Positions 1 to 18,356 are shown, counted from the first letter of the whole stretch. The stretch is DNA of 63,573 nucleotides, filler included, from Choristocarpus tenellus KU-1152 (GCA_964200185.2; 10 parts of 10 records of this genome joined end to end with filler, not necessarily neighbours in it), one strand, 5' to 3'. Notes: generated by a model not told the origin, from the sequence alone. Made by a program: numbers and translations.

Positions 1-3000
1 GTCTGTGGTTTCCACTCCCACGTTGTGGAATAATATGGTTGCTAGTTCAGCTCAATCCTTACATAATTCTTCCAGTTGAGGATGCAACATATTCTGGTAT
101 GAAATGAAATCTAGCAGATTTATGTCGTATGGTAGAATCAAAGCTCTGAAGGGATAGGACTCATGTGGTTTAAAGGGTGGACCTGTCTTGCATCGTGCGC
201 AGCCAATATAAGGTTGAATGGTCACTACAGCTGGATTGCCATAATCACTCGAAGGCACATTTTTTGGTGTTGAAAAATATTTTAGTTTGGAAGGGGGGAG
301 TAAGTCCAAAAATGATCCTATCCCGGTATTACTGGTATCAACATGTATGAAAAATCCTTTAAAACTTGGAGAAGGGCAGGACTGGAGCCACTGACAGAAA
401 TATTTTGCATTCTTCAAAAGCAGTTTGTTGTGGCAGCCTCCGTATAGATGTAGTACCACTCTTATCATTTGTCAGTATATTCCACGTGGTATGATCGTTT
501 TTGGTACTTTCCTTTGAGTATAGCAAATGAATATCACCAACAGCTCTGTACCAGTTGCAAAGTGAAGAAGGTATTTTCTCACAAATTAATGGGAACTAAG
601 AATGATTGTAGGCCAATCACTGTTTGAGGGGAGTACATTCCTAAAATAACCTGAACATGAGCTTGAGATATACTGTAGCTGTTCTATTCTGGGCTGACAT
701 CATGTCCCAAATAATATATTTTTCTGAGGCACAAAGCGCCCTGGTTGGCTTCACTAAAACCCCTACAGTTTCTAAGGTCGATAGTGCTGTTGTGATTAAT
801 TGTTGAATGTTGTGTCCAAGTTGGAGAGGTCAAAACAATATAATCTAAATATACCAATAACCCAGAGCAAGGACTGATGGTAGTAAACGTTTCAGACATG
901 AAGTGTTGAAAGAACCTCGGTGCACATTGTACTACAAATGGTATCCTCTAAATCTTCTACCATCTGTTGTGATTGAAGCAGATTTTTGTTGTTCGCATTC
1001 CCCAATTACAGTAATCGCCAATAGACCTGATTGGATATGTAGACAAGAAAACACTCCGAATCTTCCAATATCGACCAACACTATTCCATGGATGGTAAAA
1101 ACCGTTCGTTAGGTGCCAAATGATAACTAGTGATTCCTAGAAAGTCCACACAAGAGTGGAGAATTCATGAGGTTAAGCAACAATGTTAAAAAGGAATGCC
1201 CAAGGGCTTGAAGAACATTTTACTATTCCCTACTTTTCCATATTGCTTGTACATTGCGAATGATGTCGCGTACGTCATGCCATGTGATAAGGTCTACTAA
1301 CCGGTTTAGTACCTGGTTGTAGTGGAAAGTGGACAGAAATTGGGGTGTAACAGCCCAATTCATCTCCAGACAATGAGAAGACTGGTCCAATTTTTTTCAC
1401 CACAATATCTAGCAATTCCTCCTGCTCTGTTCAAGTTGGTTGTGTATTTACACAAACGCCTTCTCTAACAATAGCTTCAAATCATCCCTAGATCATTTTG
1501 GTTCTTTGGGGTTAGGCGGTTTGGGTGTATTCGTGGTGGAATCTGAGAGGGCATATGTATGTAATATGTGGGAGATACGATCTACAACAAAGTCTGCAGG
1601 TAGCTTGACCCCTTTTTTTGATAAAATGGAAATTTTGACCAAACATCCTCCACCTTCTGTCCAAACAGTGAAAATTCAACTGACCATAATATATGCTCCC
1701 AGTGGAAATGTTTTGCCCTCACCCCGTAGTAGTTCTGTGCCAGTCTTGGTGGTGGGTTTCACGAAATAATTAAGCATCCACTCCTCAAAGGGCCTGGGAA
1801 CAAACAGGAACCACGGTTTCCGTGCCAGGGGGAAGGTGCTCCTTTTTTTCTTTTGTGCAGGTATGGTGAGCTCAGGTGTGTGATCCCTGACATTGAAACA
1901 TGAGATGAAGTATTGGTCATTGATGAACTTTCGGTCTGACAATGATGTGTTGGGGGGGAAGAGATGAGAATTGGTAACATTTTGTGTGCTGCTGTAATAC
2001 CTACATCAATGTCTCTACATGGCAATTCCCTTTGCCCCGCTCTAGGACTGCCCCAAAAGCTGGCATGCTGTTCTAAAAATAAGTTGTTTCCCGACCTAGA
2101 CAACAAGCCCTATCATACCATGTATACGCCTTGTCCTACTAACTCTGAGTAAACAGAATCAACAGGGCATCCCCCTAAATTCTATCATTCCTCACTCTCT
2201 CTTTCTATGTTGTCGTGCATGGTTTCATGGGAGGAATAGTAGAGATTTCTTGCGGGTTGCACATGTTATCGTTGCCAATAAAAAGCTGACCAATCGACTC
2301 CTGATAGCAGATGTTCAAGAACACAAGACTCTGCGAGGGAAAGGTTTATTCCATGTAATTGAAATAATTCCACCAACCATAATAGTTTTTGGTGGTATAT
2401 TTACGAACCTACACCAACAATCATATATTAAGTAGTGAGAGTAGCCTCGTTTTTCGGATTTCAATAATATTTGGGATTATGATATACTACAGTATAGGAG
2501 AAAATATTTTAAAATCAAAATATTCAAGAACAGTTACAAAAAATATAGTATTGATAAGTGTTTCAAGAAAGGTTTCGACCTACTAACTCGAAACATTGTG
2601 AAGATCTGAAGACACCGAAATTGAGGAAAGAACTATACGTCTAAATGGAACTCCAAATCTCAACTTTTCCAACATTGGCAAATATTCTGAAATATTTTGG
2701 AACTATGAAACACATTACATCTGTTCTCCTCTCTCAACCTCTCCAGAACTAAAACATCAAGAAGACACGAACGAAGACAAACAACATAATCCCCACTAAC
2801 CCAAATAAACTGGATGTCGTACTTGTCCAAAGAAATATGTCTCGCACACCTTAACCTTATTATCATATTCCGTCATTAGCGCCCGCACCCAACACAAACA
2901 TGATCGAGAAGCTTATGACCCGAATTGCGGATCGAATGGGGGATACTCCAAGTTTGGGTGACGAAGGAGATTGAGTCATCGATCATAGAATTTTCCTTCA

Positions 3001-10500: not shown

Positions 10501-12094
10501 ACGATGTCTTATCACAATCAGAGACCAAAATGATCAAATAATAAATAGTCAAGAAGGACAAATATATACAATCTAGGACTTCAAGGGCATAATGGCGTTT
10601 ATGAACCCATCATGGGGTTGATTCGATTGCCTGAGGTTGTTGTGGTTCAGGAACGACTCGTGAGCATGGGGGGGCCTTCCATTTTACACTTCTTGTGTGT
10701 TAGACTGTGAAGTGTCGTAGTGGCTACTCCCTTCATCCTGCCCCCACTCCTACTTGTTTCTGTGCTGTTCTTGGACTACAGATTGTTGGTTTATTTGCAG
10801 GTCTTGAGCAGTGGTCAACCATGTGCCTATGTCATTGTGTACATTCGAATATATCATCCTTTGAAAGTTTATGCTTACACAGTTGATAACGTTTGTGTGT
10901 TGACATGTGTGTCCTGGCAACAAGCTCTCTTCTGAGTCATTGCTCCTAAGGATAAGACAGGTTTCTCTGGAGATACATGTCGTTAGTATTGTATAGCACA
11001 GCAATATGTTGCATGTGCTCTTCCTTGGTATCTCCAAGGGCCCCTGTACACCTAAGCAAATATTGCAAGTCTTGAACACCACGCACAGATACCTTACTTT
11101 CAAATTTGGACCCACAAAACTGCCTCTACTACCTGAACCAGTGTCTCAGTGTATTCTGTCCCTGATTCGACCTGCTCAGGAAAATTGGCATCGAAATTGA
11201 TCAGATACCCCTGGGAGTGAGTGCATGATGTAACCAACAAACCCAGTAGGCAGCAATACATTGTAATGTCCTTACAACTTGACGAATGAACACTAAAGCC
11301 AATCGGGATGTCTATTGCAGTGCTCTACTTGAGGTGGCCTGCAGACACAGACCATGGGTGCAACAGCACCTCTCCAGTACTTCTCCTCAACCTTTTCGCC
11401 GTTGTCTTATGGCAGTTGCGGTATACCTCCTTGTTAAGAATATGCTTTTTATTCATATGCAAAATATGATTCTGTGGGAGAAACATTTAGTTGTTGAAGT
11501 ATTGTTGGATAATGATGAAAATATTGTCCGCGGGTTATTATAATATAGCCCGATAGTATGTCTTTGTTAGGTGACAAATAAAATATTGTGTGCGGGTTAT
11601 TTTAGTACAACGCATTGAATGACGGGTTATTAGAGGATATGTGAATCGTAAGGTGATGACCCCCTTTGAGCTTGGAGGCTCACTCTCCTTTCTTACACCT
11701 NNNNNNNNNNNNNNNNNNNNNNNNNNNNNNNNNNNNNNNNNNNNTTAATTAATTAANNNNNNNNNNNNNNNNNNNNNNNNNNNNNNNNNNNNNNNNNNNN
11801 GTGTCCATTTGGGCCAAAACCAGGGAAAGTGCACTTACATTATCCATCCAACTTATGCAACAAATCGCCCAAAATTGTGACATGAAAAAATTGACCCCAA
11901 CTGGACAGTCGCCACCCCCCCCCCAAGATACTGAGCTCGTTCACCCTTCGAGCAGCCTACGCTGGAGCGTCCATGAATGACCAATATAGCAACCACACCG
12001 TCATGATTTAGCGCCTTCGGCGGATGGTTGCGACTTTCATCCGTTCACGTAGGATGTATTAGCATGTGGCTGATATGATGGTGTACCCAAGTGG

Positions 12095-12795
12095 TTGTAT
12101 TTGTTACCTTTACAACCGTGTACACACCAGCTTGCAGATGGTGGTGCCACCAACATTTCAAATACGATGCCGTGTATTAATTACTTTTTCAACCATGTAC
12201 ACACCAGCTGGCAGCAGTGGTATTACCAACATTTTCAAACCCAATGCCCTGTATTTGTTTGCGTTTCCAACCGTGTACACACCACCTGTCAGCAATGGTA
12301 ATACCAACATTTTCAGCTTCGATGCCCTGTATTTATTTGCGTTTCCAACCGTGTACACACCAACTGTCAGCGGTGGGAACACCAACATTTTCAAATTCAA
12401 TACCCTATATTTGTTACCTTCATAACCTTGTACTCACCAGCTTCGGATGGTGGTGTCACAAATTTTTGCAAAGCCGATGCCTTGTATTTATTTGCATTTC
12501 CAACCATGTACACACCAGCTGTCAGCAGTAGTAATACCAACATTTTCAAACCCGATGCCCTGTATTTATTTGCGTTTCCAACCGTGTACACACCAACTGT
12601 CAGCGGTGGGAACACCAGCATTTTCAAATTCAGTACCCCGTATTTGTTACCTTTATAACCGTGTACTCACCAGCTTCAGATGGTGATGTCGCAAATATTT
12701 TCAAATCGGATGCCCTGTATTTATTTGCGTTTCCAACCGTGTACACACCAGCTGTCAGCAGTGGTAATACCAACATTTTCAGATTCGATGCTCTA
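12095..12795. repeat. Tandem array of ~9 copies of a 77-78-bp monomer with higher-order structure
   Basis: ACC(G/A/T)TGTAC anchor at 12115, 12192, 12270, 12348, 12425, 12503, 12581, 12658, 12736. Confidence 0.95.
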
Positions 12796-13065
12796 TGTTA
12801 GAGGGCACGAGTTTTTCGCTGGTTGTCCTTTGGTGCTTGGCTGCCCACGGGTTTTCAAGGACATTGTACTACTTACTCCAAATGTTTTGGAGAAGTACAA
12901 TGTCTGCATTATGGAAAGGAGTGTTCGGAAAAAGGACATTGACATCTCCAAACAATAGTGATGGCAAAAATTACAGCAAAAATTACAGCAAAAATTACAG
13001 CAAAAATGCAACATTTGAATTCGGCCGCCAAATGGACGCGGCTCTACCCCTAAGATATTTCGAAC
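12795..13065. mobile_element. MITE family A copy (left end eroded) with an internal 12-bp triplication GCAAAAATTACA
   Basis: Body and right TIR match family A. Confidence 0.85.
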
Positions 13066-13427
13066 AGTACCCATGATACCAACCCTAGCCCTAACCAAAA
13101 TAAATCACGTACATTTTGAACACTAATCCCAATCCGCCATTTACAGATTTCACCTCGCATCGAACACGTCAACATAGAATCAATTCAACGGCTTAAGTCG
13201 GAAAGGACTACAGCGAATTTGTTGGCCGAACCTTATTCCAAAATTGGAACATGTGTTGCAGTCACATATGTTGGGAGTAATCAGACAACTGATCCGAATT
13301 AGAAGCAAGGTTCCACGATGCAATTTTCACGCACCATAACATCCGTCTATCCAGGATTACGTGGTCACACCTTCGCACATGTAAGGGCTCCGATACCATT
13401 GGAACATTTCCAATAAGGTTCGTATCG

Positions 13428-14060
13428 GAAATGGACATACACACCCCCCAACATTCTTGCCGCGCTTTGGAATTTGATGGCCTTTACCATTCGACAGAAC
13501 ACATCAAATTCATACATTGCTATCTGCCTTATGTCAAACACAAACCTGCGCATGGTTGCCCTCCCGACATCCAACCTGGGTCAGCGCATAAATTCCTTTC
13601 ATCTTCATCTTCACTTTCGTGGTTCAACGTAATGTTTTCCTGCTCAGGTTGTTAGTATTTCAAATGGACACACACACCCCAGACAGTCTTGCCGCGCTTT
13701 GGAAATTGATGGCCTTTACCATTCGACAGAACACATCAAATTCATCCATTGCTATCTGCCTTACGTCAAACACAAACCTGCGCATGGTTGCCCTCCCGAC
13801 ATCCAACCCGGGTCAGCGCGTAAATTCCTTTCATCTTCATCTTTCACTTTCGTGATTGGACTTAATGGTTTCCTGCTCAGGTTGTTAGTATTTCAAATGG
13901 ACACACACACCCTCAACAGTCTTGCCGCGCTTTGGAAATTGATGGCCTTTAATGTTCAACAGAGCACATGAAATTCATTCATTACTGTTTGCCCTATGTC
14001 AAGCACGAACCTGTGCATGATTGCCCTCGCTACATGTTACCTTGGTCGGCGCGTAAATCC
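13428..14060. repeat. Tandem 233-bp repeat, ~2.7 copies
   Basis: ATGGACA anchor at 13431, 13664, 13897. Related copies at ~25520-25850 and an inverted fragment at ~16325-16400. Confidence 0.92.
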
Positions 14061-14414
14061 TTCCCGTCTGCGTCCGGTATTGGTGCGTACTCATATTCAA
14101 TATTCATCCCATGTCGACCGGGTTTACTGTTCGATATATATATATTAGTAAATAACGGCCTTCGATGAAAGCGCTACACCGTCCTCATGTCTACAGCATC
14201 GCTACGCCCTTTTCATATCACGTTTGCATAGCCCACGCATGGACACGAACCTTGCACTCCGTACAGATCCCGTCATCATCAATCACATAGTCCATTCACT
14301 GTTCGTACAAAACACCCTTGCTGTGCTCGCCTAACAATAGCACCCACCCCTACCTCAATATTCTTCTCCTTTGCTGATACCGTTGTCTTAACATTTTCCC
14401 CTCTACATTCACAG

Positions 14415-17400
14415 ACAGCTGACTGGAGGCCCAAGGAATCATGAAGACCAAAAGACGACAGGCTTGATCACGTCCAACCTCAAAGCGACACATATGATGG
14501 ATCTGACCACATCCGAGTTCTTGTCACAGAGGTACAACGCCAACCTTCTTGACAACAGTAGAGTTGAGTCTATGTTCTCGAAGCTGGGGTCGGACCCACA
14601 GGTTGCTGCCCATAGGCTCGCGGGGATTCTGAGTGGGCAACCTTTTTCACTGTGCTCGAGATGGCCAACTATAAGCGACTTCAAAGCCGACATGAGCAGG
14701 GTAAACGTGCCCTCTAGTGTGCCTGATAGGGAACTACTTGAAAACTATATCGCCAACGGTAACCTGGACGTAAACCATAATGGCAACAATAGGGATATAG
14801 ACGACGACTACAACCTCTTGTTTTGCCTTAATGGACAACAACGCATAATGGTTTTGAGGACAAATGAATGCGTCGCCAAGGAGGACAATGTCTCATATGG
14901 AATAAAACTCCCGGCCCACGTCACAATGTGATGGGCCTCAGACGTAGGAATAAACCTACAGATTGGTCAGCACAGGAGCTTCATGTGGAAGATATATCCA
15001 CACAGAAGCCGGGAAAAGGCTGAATCCATCTCCATAGGAGAGAGTGTTGCAGAGCCAAAGCATCTTAGAGGGGGTAGGGCCTCGTCCATTTGGGCGCGAA
15101 AATCCAATGTTGCGATTTTGATGTAATTTTGGCTATCGTGATTTTTGGGAAATGTCACTATCCTTGTTCTGAACACACCTTTTCATGACGAATATATTTT
15201 ACCTACTCCTAAAACGTTTGGAGTAGGAAAATATCATAAAAATACGCCATGGGAAGTCAAGCCCCTAAAGGACAAACAGGGCAAAACTTGTACCCTCTAA
15301 GATACTTTCACTTGCCAGTAGGTCGCATGTGCCAAACATTCTGGACATTTTCATTTCGATGGTGTCTTGGGTTGCCGCCATCCTGGAGTATAGGCATGAC
15401 TTCAGGTGCGACAGGTTCCACCCCTACGTCCAGGAAACGGAAGAGGACTCTGATCGTTGCATGCGCATGACGACATTGGTGACCAGGTGCAACCAATATT
15501 GTCTGGGAGACATAGACTTCCGGAGCGCCGATGCCGTGTTACAGACGGCTATTAAGAGGAGGGTAGCTGCCAAGATAAAGGCATTCCTCAAAGAAGCTTG
15601 GGAGGATACACACATGGAAGCCAGGGTGAATAGACTCACTGACCAGAACTTCGTCCAGTTCTTCAATGCGATTGCCACCCCTGTCTACATATGTGTGGGA
15701 GAAGGTGAGATTCTCACGGCTCCTTCCACAGGAAACGATTGGTGGAACGATTGTTGAGCACCGCCTACCTTTCGTCGCCCATATCCATATTAATTCCGCG
15801 TCGGTGATCCAACCAACCCGATCCCTTCCCTTCCCTCACTATGTTCCACCAGAGACAAAAGAACTGGAGGAGATCCTTCTCGGTGTGTGGAGAGAGCACA
15901 AGAAGTGCGACGGGTCAAGTGTAAGCATGGTGCAGTTATCCCCACATTTGTACACCCAATACCCCATCACTAACGGCCCAACAACACCGTAGTATCCCCT
16001 GCCTTCGCATAATGAGCTTGAATTGACATTTTATACATGTGTAATCCTATCAACCTTATGACATACGCCATAAACCAACAGACCCACTCCCACTCCCACG
16101 TTCTTCTGTCCTGATCATGTCGCCTTATCCTCCACACACCCACGCGCACCTGACTAGGACAAATTCGACTTCAGAGCGGTTCACATATGTTCACTGTGCT
16201 GTGGTATGCTAATGCGGACGCTGCCATGGAGTCCCTCGAGAACAGCGGGGGGTTCACACACAACCACAGGTTGAAGGTGGGGTAAACATGTTCCTAACTA
16301 TGTTGTCCCCACATGATGACGCCAAACCTGACATAGGGCAGACAGTAATGAAGCAATTTGATGTGTTCCGTCGAATGGTAAAGGCCATCAGTTTCCAAAG
16401 AACCCCAAGTCCATAGGGTTCTGCTGCGCTATGCGCATCCCCTAGTAGTCCTTCTCTGATAGATTCACTGTTAACCCTAAATCCTTCACATCCTCAAAGC
16501 TCGTTCTTTATCGGTCTCCTAACGACACACCATCGCACATTTGATGTACATGTAGCTCACGGACAAGATCAAGGAGTAGTATTTCGCAAGATTGTGCACC
16601 GATGTCCTCACTGGAGTCGGCTTAGCCACCCTGGAGTCGGCTTAGCCACCCTTAGAGGGGAGACCCCCCAAGGCCATCGCTGGCGCGACATTGTCGAGGT
16701 GGCTGCCCACGTCTGCTCAGAACAGGCAGACAAAAAATCGCCTACTGACGCGCTCTCATTGACGTATGTTGTCGGGACGGAGACATTTCCAGAGGAATGG
16801 GTAAGTCGATTTTGACCGTGAGGATTCAAGCAACGTATGGATGTATATGCATATACCCCCCTGCTGACCCTGCAACAGCAGCAATGTTTACCGTCTAGTT
16901 CGTGCCTCGCGGGGCAGACACCCATGTCATCCATGTGACTTACCGTTCTACTACCCATGTGCTTCTCCATTGACAGTTCTCCCACACTCTAAGGGGCGTC
17001 CGGAACAAACAGCCCCCGGCCGACCTGGACAAAGGGAAGAAGAAGACCAGAGGAAAGGGGAAGAAGAACAGATCAGGGGTCGGCGATCCAGACCTGGCGT
17101 CTACCGTCCAGGCGGAGGAGGAGTGGGCGTCTCAACCCTGGAAAGTCCAATTGGCATATATAAGACGTATGCACACCAAGAATGTCCTCATCAAGAGGGC
17201 TGTCCTGGAGGTCGCCATACAAATTATGAACGACCTAAAAAGGAAAGACAAGCTCGGGATAGACCCCTACGCTGATGACTCCTCAGCAGGGTCTTTTCAG
17301 CAGAGGGTCCTCCTACCAAAAGATACATCCTCAGCGACGAGGTACTCAACTGAGTGTGAGGTTCATCACTTTTCATCTCTCCACCGTATTTCAGTTGGTA

Positions 17401-18356
17401 TCAAGTCACCTCACAACAAATGCCCTCATATCGCGCACATTAATGTAACCCCTTAAAATCCACAGGTGAAAAGGGACCTCGTGTTGCGGGAGGATGTGGA
17501 GGAGGGTACAAATTACCTGGACATCGTCAAATACTCTGAGGGCATTACCCTGAACACTAGTGACGAACACACAGGCAAGCAATTACATCATTGTACAACA
17601 TCGCCATAGGTTAACATCCAAAACATATGGTTACTTACACCAAACACACAACCTAGACTCTCACAGATCTTACCAGCGTTTGACAGTTTCACAACGAACA
17701 TTGCTACAGGGTTCTCTGCTGCGAGCTGCTCGTCGAACAGATTGATTCATACTTTTGCTGTGTTGTACCGATCGACAGAATCCGGCAAAAGAAGGGAAAT
17801 TATGTCGCGGTTACATGCTAGCCCTATACGCATCCTCTTCACCCTATTTTACCAGCCCTATTTATCTTCCTGTTTTGTGGGCTCAAATAATCCACCCAAG
17901 TTTAACGAACCGCAAGTACTCTAATCCATCCATCTTTTCCTCAGCCCCTGCCTCCTACTCTGTATCCTGCCTTGCTTACTCCTTCTCATGAACGTCTATC
18001 TCATCCCTTGCCTCCTAACGCTAACACCTCCTCCCGTTGTTTTGACCCCTACTTCGCCAGGTCCTTTGCCTACTCCTCCACACTATCACAGAGATAACTA
18101 GAGTCACAGCCATCATGATCACCCAAGAAAGAACGACACATCCGAGCACGACCTCGAGAAGTTCAAGTCCGAAACAAGTGCCGCTCACGAGAGAGAAGTC
18201 GCCCTTCTCCAGACCCGACCAGGAGGCATGGTAATCACATGCACCGCCCTCGGGGACAACCTAGATCCGGATCGTATCAAAATCCTCATAGACGAAATCT
18301 CCACCTTCCGCAAATTTGCACTGGTGAAGACACCAGTAGCTGGTGCATATCCACGC
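14415..18356 (+). pseudogene. Large multi-exon gene (pseudogenised) with an N-terminal ParB/Srx-like domain
   Basis: Putative exons ~14415-15920, 16158-16281, 16556-16800, 16977-17341, 17467-17574, 17710-17810, 18061->18356, mostly with AG/GT borders. Motifs QRYNANLLD..RVESMF, GILSGQPFSL and LFCLNGQQRIMVL (14821-14844). Lesions: TGA 14929, MITE 15052-15313, frameshift ~15676, TAG 16577, 20-bp duplication ~16611-16651. Confidence 0.7.
15052..15313. mobile_element. MITE family A copy inserted in coding exon
   Basis: Both TIRs present; coding-like sequence resumes after it. Confidence 0.9.

Follow-up and report, generated by a model that had tools for sequence, protein, structure and literature searches.

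A decayed copy of a dispersed multi-copy DNA unit with tandem arrays and an intron-bearing orphan gene, probably borne by a large DNA transposon or similar element

The DNA described here is a 6.5-kb piece (positions 11801-18356, G+C 42-55%) of a window from Choristocarpus tenellus KU-1152; the window is the whole stretch of 63,573 nt, and all positions are counted from its first letter. The piece contains two tandem arrays followed by a damaged gene with several introns, and DNA of this kind recurs in many diverged copies. On balance, we consider it probable that the piece is one dead copy of a middle-repetitive DNA unit in a eukaryotic genome rich in miniature inverted-repeat transposable elements (MITEs), the most likely identity of this unit being a large DNA transposon or some other dispersed element. 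The unit would include at least a 233-bp array, probably a 78-bp array too, and the intron-bearing gene, which is an orphan: its product has no detectable relatives in the searches made. As the vehicle, a large cut-and-paste or other DNA transposon seems most likely. In that case, the gene would be a second or accessory open reading frame (ORF) carried by the element, and the arrays would serve as subterminal or regulatory repeats that change in length by unequal exchange. A sequence-only reading of this DNA had gone further and proposed that the first exon encodes a ParB/Srx-fold protein beside its own binding array; the layout that it described is borne out below, and the fold is not.

The repetitive nature of the unit was established from contigs of two public runs (X1 and X2), which were placed on 12357-18356 at a likeness of at least 80%. 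In both runs, each of the 30 bins of 200 nt had many contigs with 80-95% identity, and variant sites were covered by 8-42 contigs each. The summed depth was approximately 800-3000 in X1 and 150-2700 in X2, as compared with approximately 16-30 and 4-11, respectively, for single pieces. By a rough estimate, the family numbers about 100 copies in the X1/X2 genome. Many diverged copies of the whole unit are thus present there, as is characteristic of a dispersed repeat family, and this repetition fits a selfish or dispersed element. Introns, upstream spacer and arrays were as deep as exons. Since not just the exons but also the introns and the non-coding upstream DNA are repeated, we infer that the unit was copied as DNA and not via spliced RNA. 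Contigs of other copies also bridge the end of the 233-bp array (array 2) and the gene's upstream region (13959-14241 and 14085-14384); therefore, several copies combine array 2 with the gene, as had been predicted for the arrays in general.

The gene lies downstream of the arrays on the + strand, where we distinguish at least seven exon-like blocks, in agreement with the earlier description of an exon of more than 1000 nt followed by further exons with AG/GT-type borders. Its parts are as follows (a slash marks a splice border):

14063-14493, + strand: pyrimidine-rich upstream/5′ region of the gene, GC skew -0.28 to -0.31
14494-14928, + strand: exon 1 block a, from ATG ATG; QR at 14527-14532, NGQQR at 14830-14844; a TGA ends the block
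14932-15063, + strand: exon 1 block b, same frame past the stop, from frame translation
15302-15706, + strand: block c of exon 1, continuing the frame of block b when a MITE is skipped; donor G/GTGAGA
15707-15840, + strand: intron 1, 134 nt, GT..AG, phase 1; G/gtgaga...ccaccag/AG restores a GAG codon
15841-15925, + strand: exon 2 (..TKELEEILLGVWREHKKCDGSS), donor GTAAGC
16158-16276, + strand: exon 3, acceptor 16157/16158, phase 0; the present copy has 2 nt inserted near 16185
16556-16800, + strand: exon-4-like block carrying a tandem duplication of 20 bp (16611-16652); donor GTAAGT at 16801
16977-17360, + strand: exon 5 with basic stretch KGKKKTRGKGKKNR; acceptor TTGACAG/, donor GAG/GTTCAT, phase 0
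17466-17575, + strand: exon 6 (VKRDLVLREDVEEGTNYLDIVKYSEG..), acceptor CCACAG/, phase 0; 3′ end uncertain
18102-18356, + strand: last open block, from frame translation; it runs past the right edge of the piece, where the gene is cut off and its downstream part, any transposase included, is out of view

Exon 1 as a whole (14494-15706) spans 1213 nt with the MITE and approximately 975 nt without it. The peptides quoted by the sequence-only reading were recovered in a single open frame, 14392-14928, which holds ...SQRYNANLLDNSRVESMFSKL...GILSGQPFSL...LFCLNGQQRIMVL. Altogether, the gene comprises approximately 700 or more codons in at least seven exons, both figures being approximate. By eye, the basic stretch of exon 5 resembles a nuclear-localisation signal, which suggests a nuclear protein.

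Results of the coding analysis bear on whether there is a gene here at all. The open frames could be chance products of stop-poor repeat sequence, since open stretches averaging about 133 codons are found in shuffles of this region too, no block has a homologue, and both structure models obtained for the product are of low confidence. Yet open stretches of at least 100 codons sum to 992 codons on the + strand of 14392-18356 and to 227 on the - strand, a fourfold difference, and in dinucleotide shuffles the mean was 261 open codons, with none of the 500 shuffles reaching 992. Four introns have GT-AG boundaries with fitting phases: 15707-15840 (phase 1), 15926-16157, 16801-16976 and 17361-17465. 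The composition alternates accordingly, with a GC skew near zero in the exon blocks and of about -0.3 in the pyrimidine-rich stretches between them. In addition, an indel seen in other copies reopens exon 3. We therefore regard a chance origin of the frames as very improbable. A multi-exon eukaryotic gene beside tandem arrays, as first described, is what the coding signal and the in-phase boundaries point to.

The same frames show that this copy of the gene is dead, as had been noted before. Block a of exon 1 ends at an in-frame TGA (14929-14931), and a 238-bp MITE separates blocks b and c. Leaving out the 2 nt inserted near 16185 opens exon 3 from the acceptor onwards in phase 0; therefore, this copy is frameshifted, and approximately 45% of the copy depth lacks these 2 nt. 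In the exon-4-like block, a perfect 20-bp tandem duplication (CTGGAGTCGGCTTAGCCACC x2.1) occupies 16611-16652, and the contig of another copy, placed at 16366-16694, has 22 gap positions there. This duplication is probably private to the present copy and shifts the frame.

Tandem arrays were called with Tandem Repeats Finder, and the nine 78-bp monomers of array 1 were aligned among themselves. Upstream of the gene and within it, the following repeats were mapped:

12096-12791, no strand assigned: array 1, nine 78-bp monomers forming a three-monomer (233-bp) higher-order repeat, from Tandem Repeats Finder and the monomer alignment
13429-14062, no strand assigned: array 2, 233-bp unit x2.7 with 89% match, from Tandem Repeats Finder; self-comparison placed the unit's copies at 13378-14074
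16320-16412, - strand: inverted partial copy of the array-2 unit, approximately 90 nt at 81-84% identity, from self-comparison; it lies inside an intron-like stretch

The repeat caller described array 1 as a 78-bp unit x8.8 at 12109-12791 or, alternatively, as a 233-bp unit x2.9 with 84% match. Its monomers fall into three subtypes with 84-97% identity one 233-bp period apart and 55-75% between subtypes. We call it a three-monomer higher-order repeat because the three subtypes recur in fixed order. The palindromes previously reported in the 78-bp monomers are present, but they are not strictly conserved: GTGTACAC is intact in five of the nine monomers and CAGCTG in three, and the best-kept block is AACC.TGTAC.CACCA. 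The unit of array 2 has a sequence unrelated to that of array 1. Between other copies, the length of array 1 varies, as seen from contig joints that go back 78 or skip 174 positions; a joint that skips 409 positions is a further difference in array length. The inverted array-2 fragment at 16320-16412 recurs only once and has no depth spike, as would be expected of a high-copy repeat in its own right; it may be debris of a rearrangement or a binding site inside the gene. Between the two arrays, at 13081-13096, there is a telomere-like AACCCTAGCCCTAACC of approximately 1.5 units, which may be due to chance.

One MITE of approximately 240-260 bp is present three times in the 6.5 kb; its 9-bp inverted ends read CTTAGAGGG/CCCTCTAAG, and it has a conserved block, GTCCATTTGG:

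11801-11927, + strand: MITE copy c, cut by the left edge of the piece; it aligns with the other two copies and ends ...CCCCAAG
12797-13055, - strand: MITE copy a, abutting the end of array 1, from repeat pairs and alignment
15064-15301, + strand: MITE copy b, 238 bp, inserted in exon 1, with ends CTTAGAGGG/CCCTCTAAG, from sequence and alignment

The dinucleotide AT flanks both full copies. The exon 1 frame remains open through copy b, and a contig joint 15047->15314 represents copies of the unit that are free of the exon-1 MITE. Contigs of other copies cross the right end of copy a into the spacer (12853-13277 and 12988-13286). The summed depth of the MITE bins reached about 600,000 as compared with 800-3000 around them. 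In the two runs, the MITE was approximately 200-400 times as deep as the repeat family around it, so that it is extremely abundant in the X1/X2 genome. Inside copy a, at 12964-13007, we noted a 12-bp microsatellite (GCAAAAATTACA)x3.7 that does not occur in copy b.

The main rival to the transposon reading is that the copies form a multigene family of the host that does not move, such as a subtelomeric or segmentally duplicated one, with satellite arrays upstream of its members and the present member a pseudogene. Tandem arrays and the telomere-like AACCCTAGCCCTAACC upstream of the gene would suit such a family, as would the fact that neither a transposase nor element ends were seen. The distribution of gaps could also reflect selection: there were none in four of the five exon-1 contig pieces, whereas all seven non-exon pieces had them. 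On the other hand, substitutions are no fewer in exons than in introns and flanks (14-21% in exon pieces, 9-16% in non-exon pieces), and such similar levels fit the expectation for neutrally decaying dispersed copies. About 100 copies at 5-20% divergence also argue against a host family. Moreover, exon 1 has no relative among 1.84 billion protein representatives, which would be unusual for a conserved family, although the library does not include the proteins of this genome itself. We conclude that a host multigene family is unlikely, and we favour the dispersed DNA element.

Several observations weigh against that preference and limit its reach. Neither a transposase, nor terminal inverted repeats, nor a target-site duplication was found within 11801-18356, in agreement with the earlier statement that none is visible; the gene exits the right edge and the element may extend further. 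Mobility, the class of element and a role of the arrays are accordingly inferred, whereas the arrays themselves, the coding signal, the lesions, the multi-copy state and the differences between copies are shown. No contig in the two runs links array 1 directly to the gene, so that this half of the predicted co-occurrence was not recovered. The phases of exons 3 and 4 do not join cleanly, and the gene model is approximate. The runs X1 and X2 come from a related genome or strain that is not certainly the source, and the copy number describes that genome: 21% of the sampled words of the stretch are present in X1, and at many sites none of the X1/X2 contigs carries the base of the window. The copy number itself, being taken from summed contig depth, is a rough measure. 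Scans of the piece with Rfam and for tRNAs revealed no RNA genes.

Large eukaryotic DNA transposons (EnSpm/CACTA, KDZ/Plavaka, Sola and the giant algal elements; PMC12477816) resemble the unit in several respects: they are multi-kb, DNA-copied units with introns and a multi-exon ORF, with tandem repeats near one side, nested MITEs and many diverged copies. The differences are that the available 6.5 kb holds no transposase, no CACTA-type ends and no target-site duplication, and that the window gene matches no known transposon protein profile.

Extensive searches were made for relatives of the gene product, with each exon block used as a separate query rather than as part of one spliced protein. 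Profiles of Pfam, NCBIfam and PADLOC gave no family for any exon block at E values (expected numbers of chance matches) up to 10; this includes ParB_N (PF02195/TIGR00180), for which exon 1 had no match in the Pfam and NCBIfam hmmscan runs, and DUF3723 (PF12520), which matched no exon block. The matches to ParB, DUF262, DndB and DUF3723 families that had been anticipated were accordingly not obtained. An exhaustive phmmer search of exon 1 against the 1.84 billion representatives returned one spurious repeat protein and no DUF3723 protein. PDB sequences gave nothing useful, and when 72,556 plasmids and 50,697 phages were searched by tblastn (E up to 10), there were chance matches only, with no ParB-type gene. 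Word-based protein searches, metagenome scans and viral-contig scans revealed no relatives, and in an exact look-up none of ten ORFs was present in the protein collection.

We also considered that exon 1 could be a ParB/Srx-fold domain of DGQHR/DUF262 type, whose protein would bind the element's own arrays as ParB binds parS. In its favour, a hydrophobic strand (LLFCL) precedes NGQQR, and 100 residues upstream of NGQQR there is a QR pair. Base 14841, an A here, is C in nearly all other copies, and thus the family reads NGQHR; the two forms match both known variants of the pentapeptide, DGQ(H/Q)R. The motifs described for the DGQHR domain are QR, a nearly invariant DGQ(Q/H)R and FxxxN (PMC4619093). 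When set beside DGQHR/DndB (PF14072, TIGR03187) and DUF262/GmrS (PF03235) proteins, exon 1 resembles them in its pentapeptide (NGQQR, or NGQHR in other copies) after a hydrophobic stretch and in the upstream QR. Unlike them, it has N in place of D, no FxxxN within 70 residues past the pentapeptide, and a QR to GQQR spacing of 100 residues, twice the usual (about 35-55 in the reference sets). By chance, [DN]GQ[QH]R arose in 16 of 2000 (0.8%) dinucleotide shuffles of the 6.5-kb piece read in six frames, which is too frequent for the pentapeptide to bear the ParB claim when many windows are scanned.

For a targeted comparison, profiles were built from natural proteins with DGQQR(L)T or I-I-D-G-Q-H-R taken from viral contigs: 114 DUF262-like DGQQR proteins, 107 DGQHR proteins, and the N-R and Q-R subsets of the latter. 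Exon 1 was scored with the HMMER filters off and compared with 1000 shuffles in which the pentapeptide was held fixed; the scoring was repeated with one residue of exon 1 set to H, as encoded by the base read in other copies. The results were:

DGQQR (DUF262-like) profile: real score -0.7 bits; 388 of 1000 shuffles as high; 164 of 1000 with consensus H
DGQHR (all) profile: real score 0.5 bits; 90 of 1000 shuffles as high; 43 of 1000 with consensus H
DGQHR N-R subset profile: real score -1.8 bits; 680 of 1000 shuffles as high; 61 of 1000 with consensus H
DGQHR Q-R subset profile: real score -2.1 bits; 453 of 1000 shuffles as high; 209 of 1000 with consensus H

With the consensus H, the scores were -0.7 to 4.1 bits across the four profiles, and the alignments were limited to GQHR plus a few residues. 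Depending on the profile and the residue used, 43 to 680 of 1000 shuffles thus equalled exon 1. The similarity of exon 1 to these profiles beyond the pentapeptide is no better than chance. The same I-I-D-G-Q-H-R motif was met, as an exact DNA pattern, in eight IMG/VR giant-virus contigs from metagenome-assembled genomes. Viruses of eukaryotes may therefore carry DGQHR-type ParB-fold proteins among them, although no relative of the window gene was found there.

Comparison by protein language model gave a weak lead. In the ESM Atlas, DUF3723 accounted for 9 of the 30 clusters nearest to block a of exon 1 (score 0.91), and ParB_N was also among the neighbours (0.90), but the recognition value (2232) was under the threshold, and block c (135 residues) had no match (0.80). 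Single-sequence AlphaFold2 prediction of exon 1, made with no homologues for an alignment, reached a predicted local distance difference test score (pLDDT) of 44.6 and a predicted template modelling score (pTM) of 0.34, too poor for a fold search, and a second single-sequence model reached a pLDDT of 46.7. Neither profiles, nor sequence searches, nor shuffle tests thus support the ParB/Srx fold proposed for exon 1, and we judge it quite improbable.

There is precedent for proteins of this kind on mobile DNA, as giant transposons of algae carry ParB-like and DNA methyltransferase accessory proteins (PMC12477816). Like them, the window product would be encoded by an element-borne eukaryotic gene and is a proposed binder of its own element's DNA. 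Unlike them, it was not found by domain searches, in which it has no ParB or methyltransferase match. DUF3723 is a conserved accessory gene of the fungal Starship elements (PMC9156397). The window gene would likewise be a mobile-element accessory gene, and it shares the Atlas neighbourhood described above; it differs in having no PF12520 match and in that the Atlas yields nothing for the next 135 residues, even though the DUF3723 domain extends over approximately 510 residues. The exon-intron structure differs as well. The introns of the window gene are longer and more numerous than would be expected of Pezizomycotina genes. The most elaborate proposal is that intact members of the family encode a very divergent DGQHR-type ParB/Srx-fold protein, beyond the reach of current profiles, that a multi-copy eukaryotic element would carry and that would load on that element's 78-bp or 233-bp arrays, as a partition-like or self-marking nuclear module possibly tied distantly to the Starship DUF3723; we regard it as a decidedly long shot.

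As it stands, the piece represents a repeat family of no assigned class that carries an orphan gene, in a eukaryote rich in repeats; this aids repeat annotation and is in itself unsurprising. If the fold of an intact copy proved to be of ParB type, the ParB-like accessory proteins recently reported from giant algal transposons would gain a very divergent lineage, with a candidate cognate array adjoining the gene. Such a result might also give a first functional hint for DUF3723.

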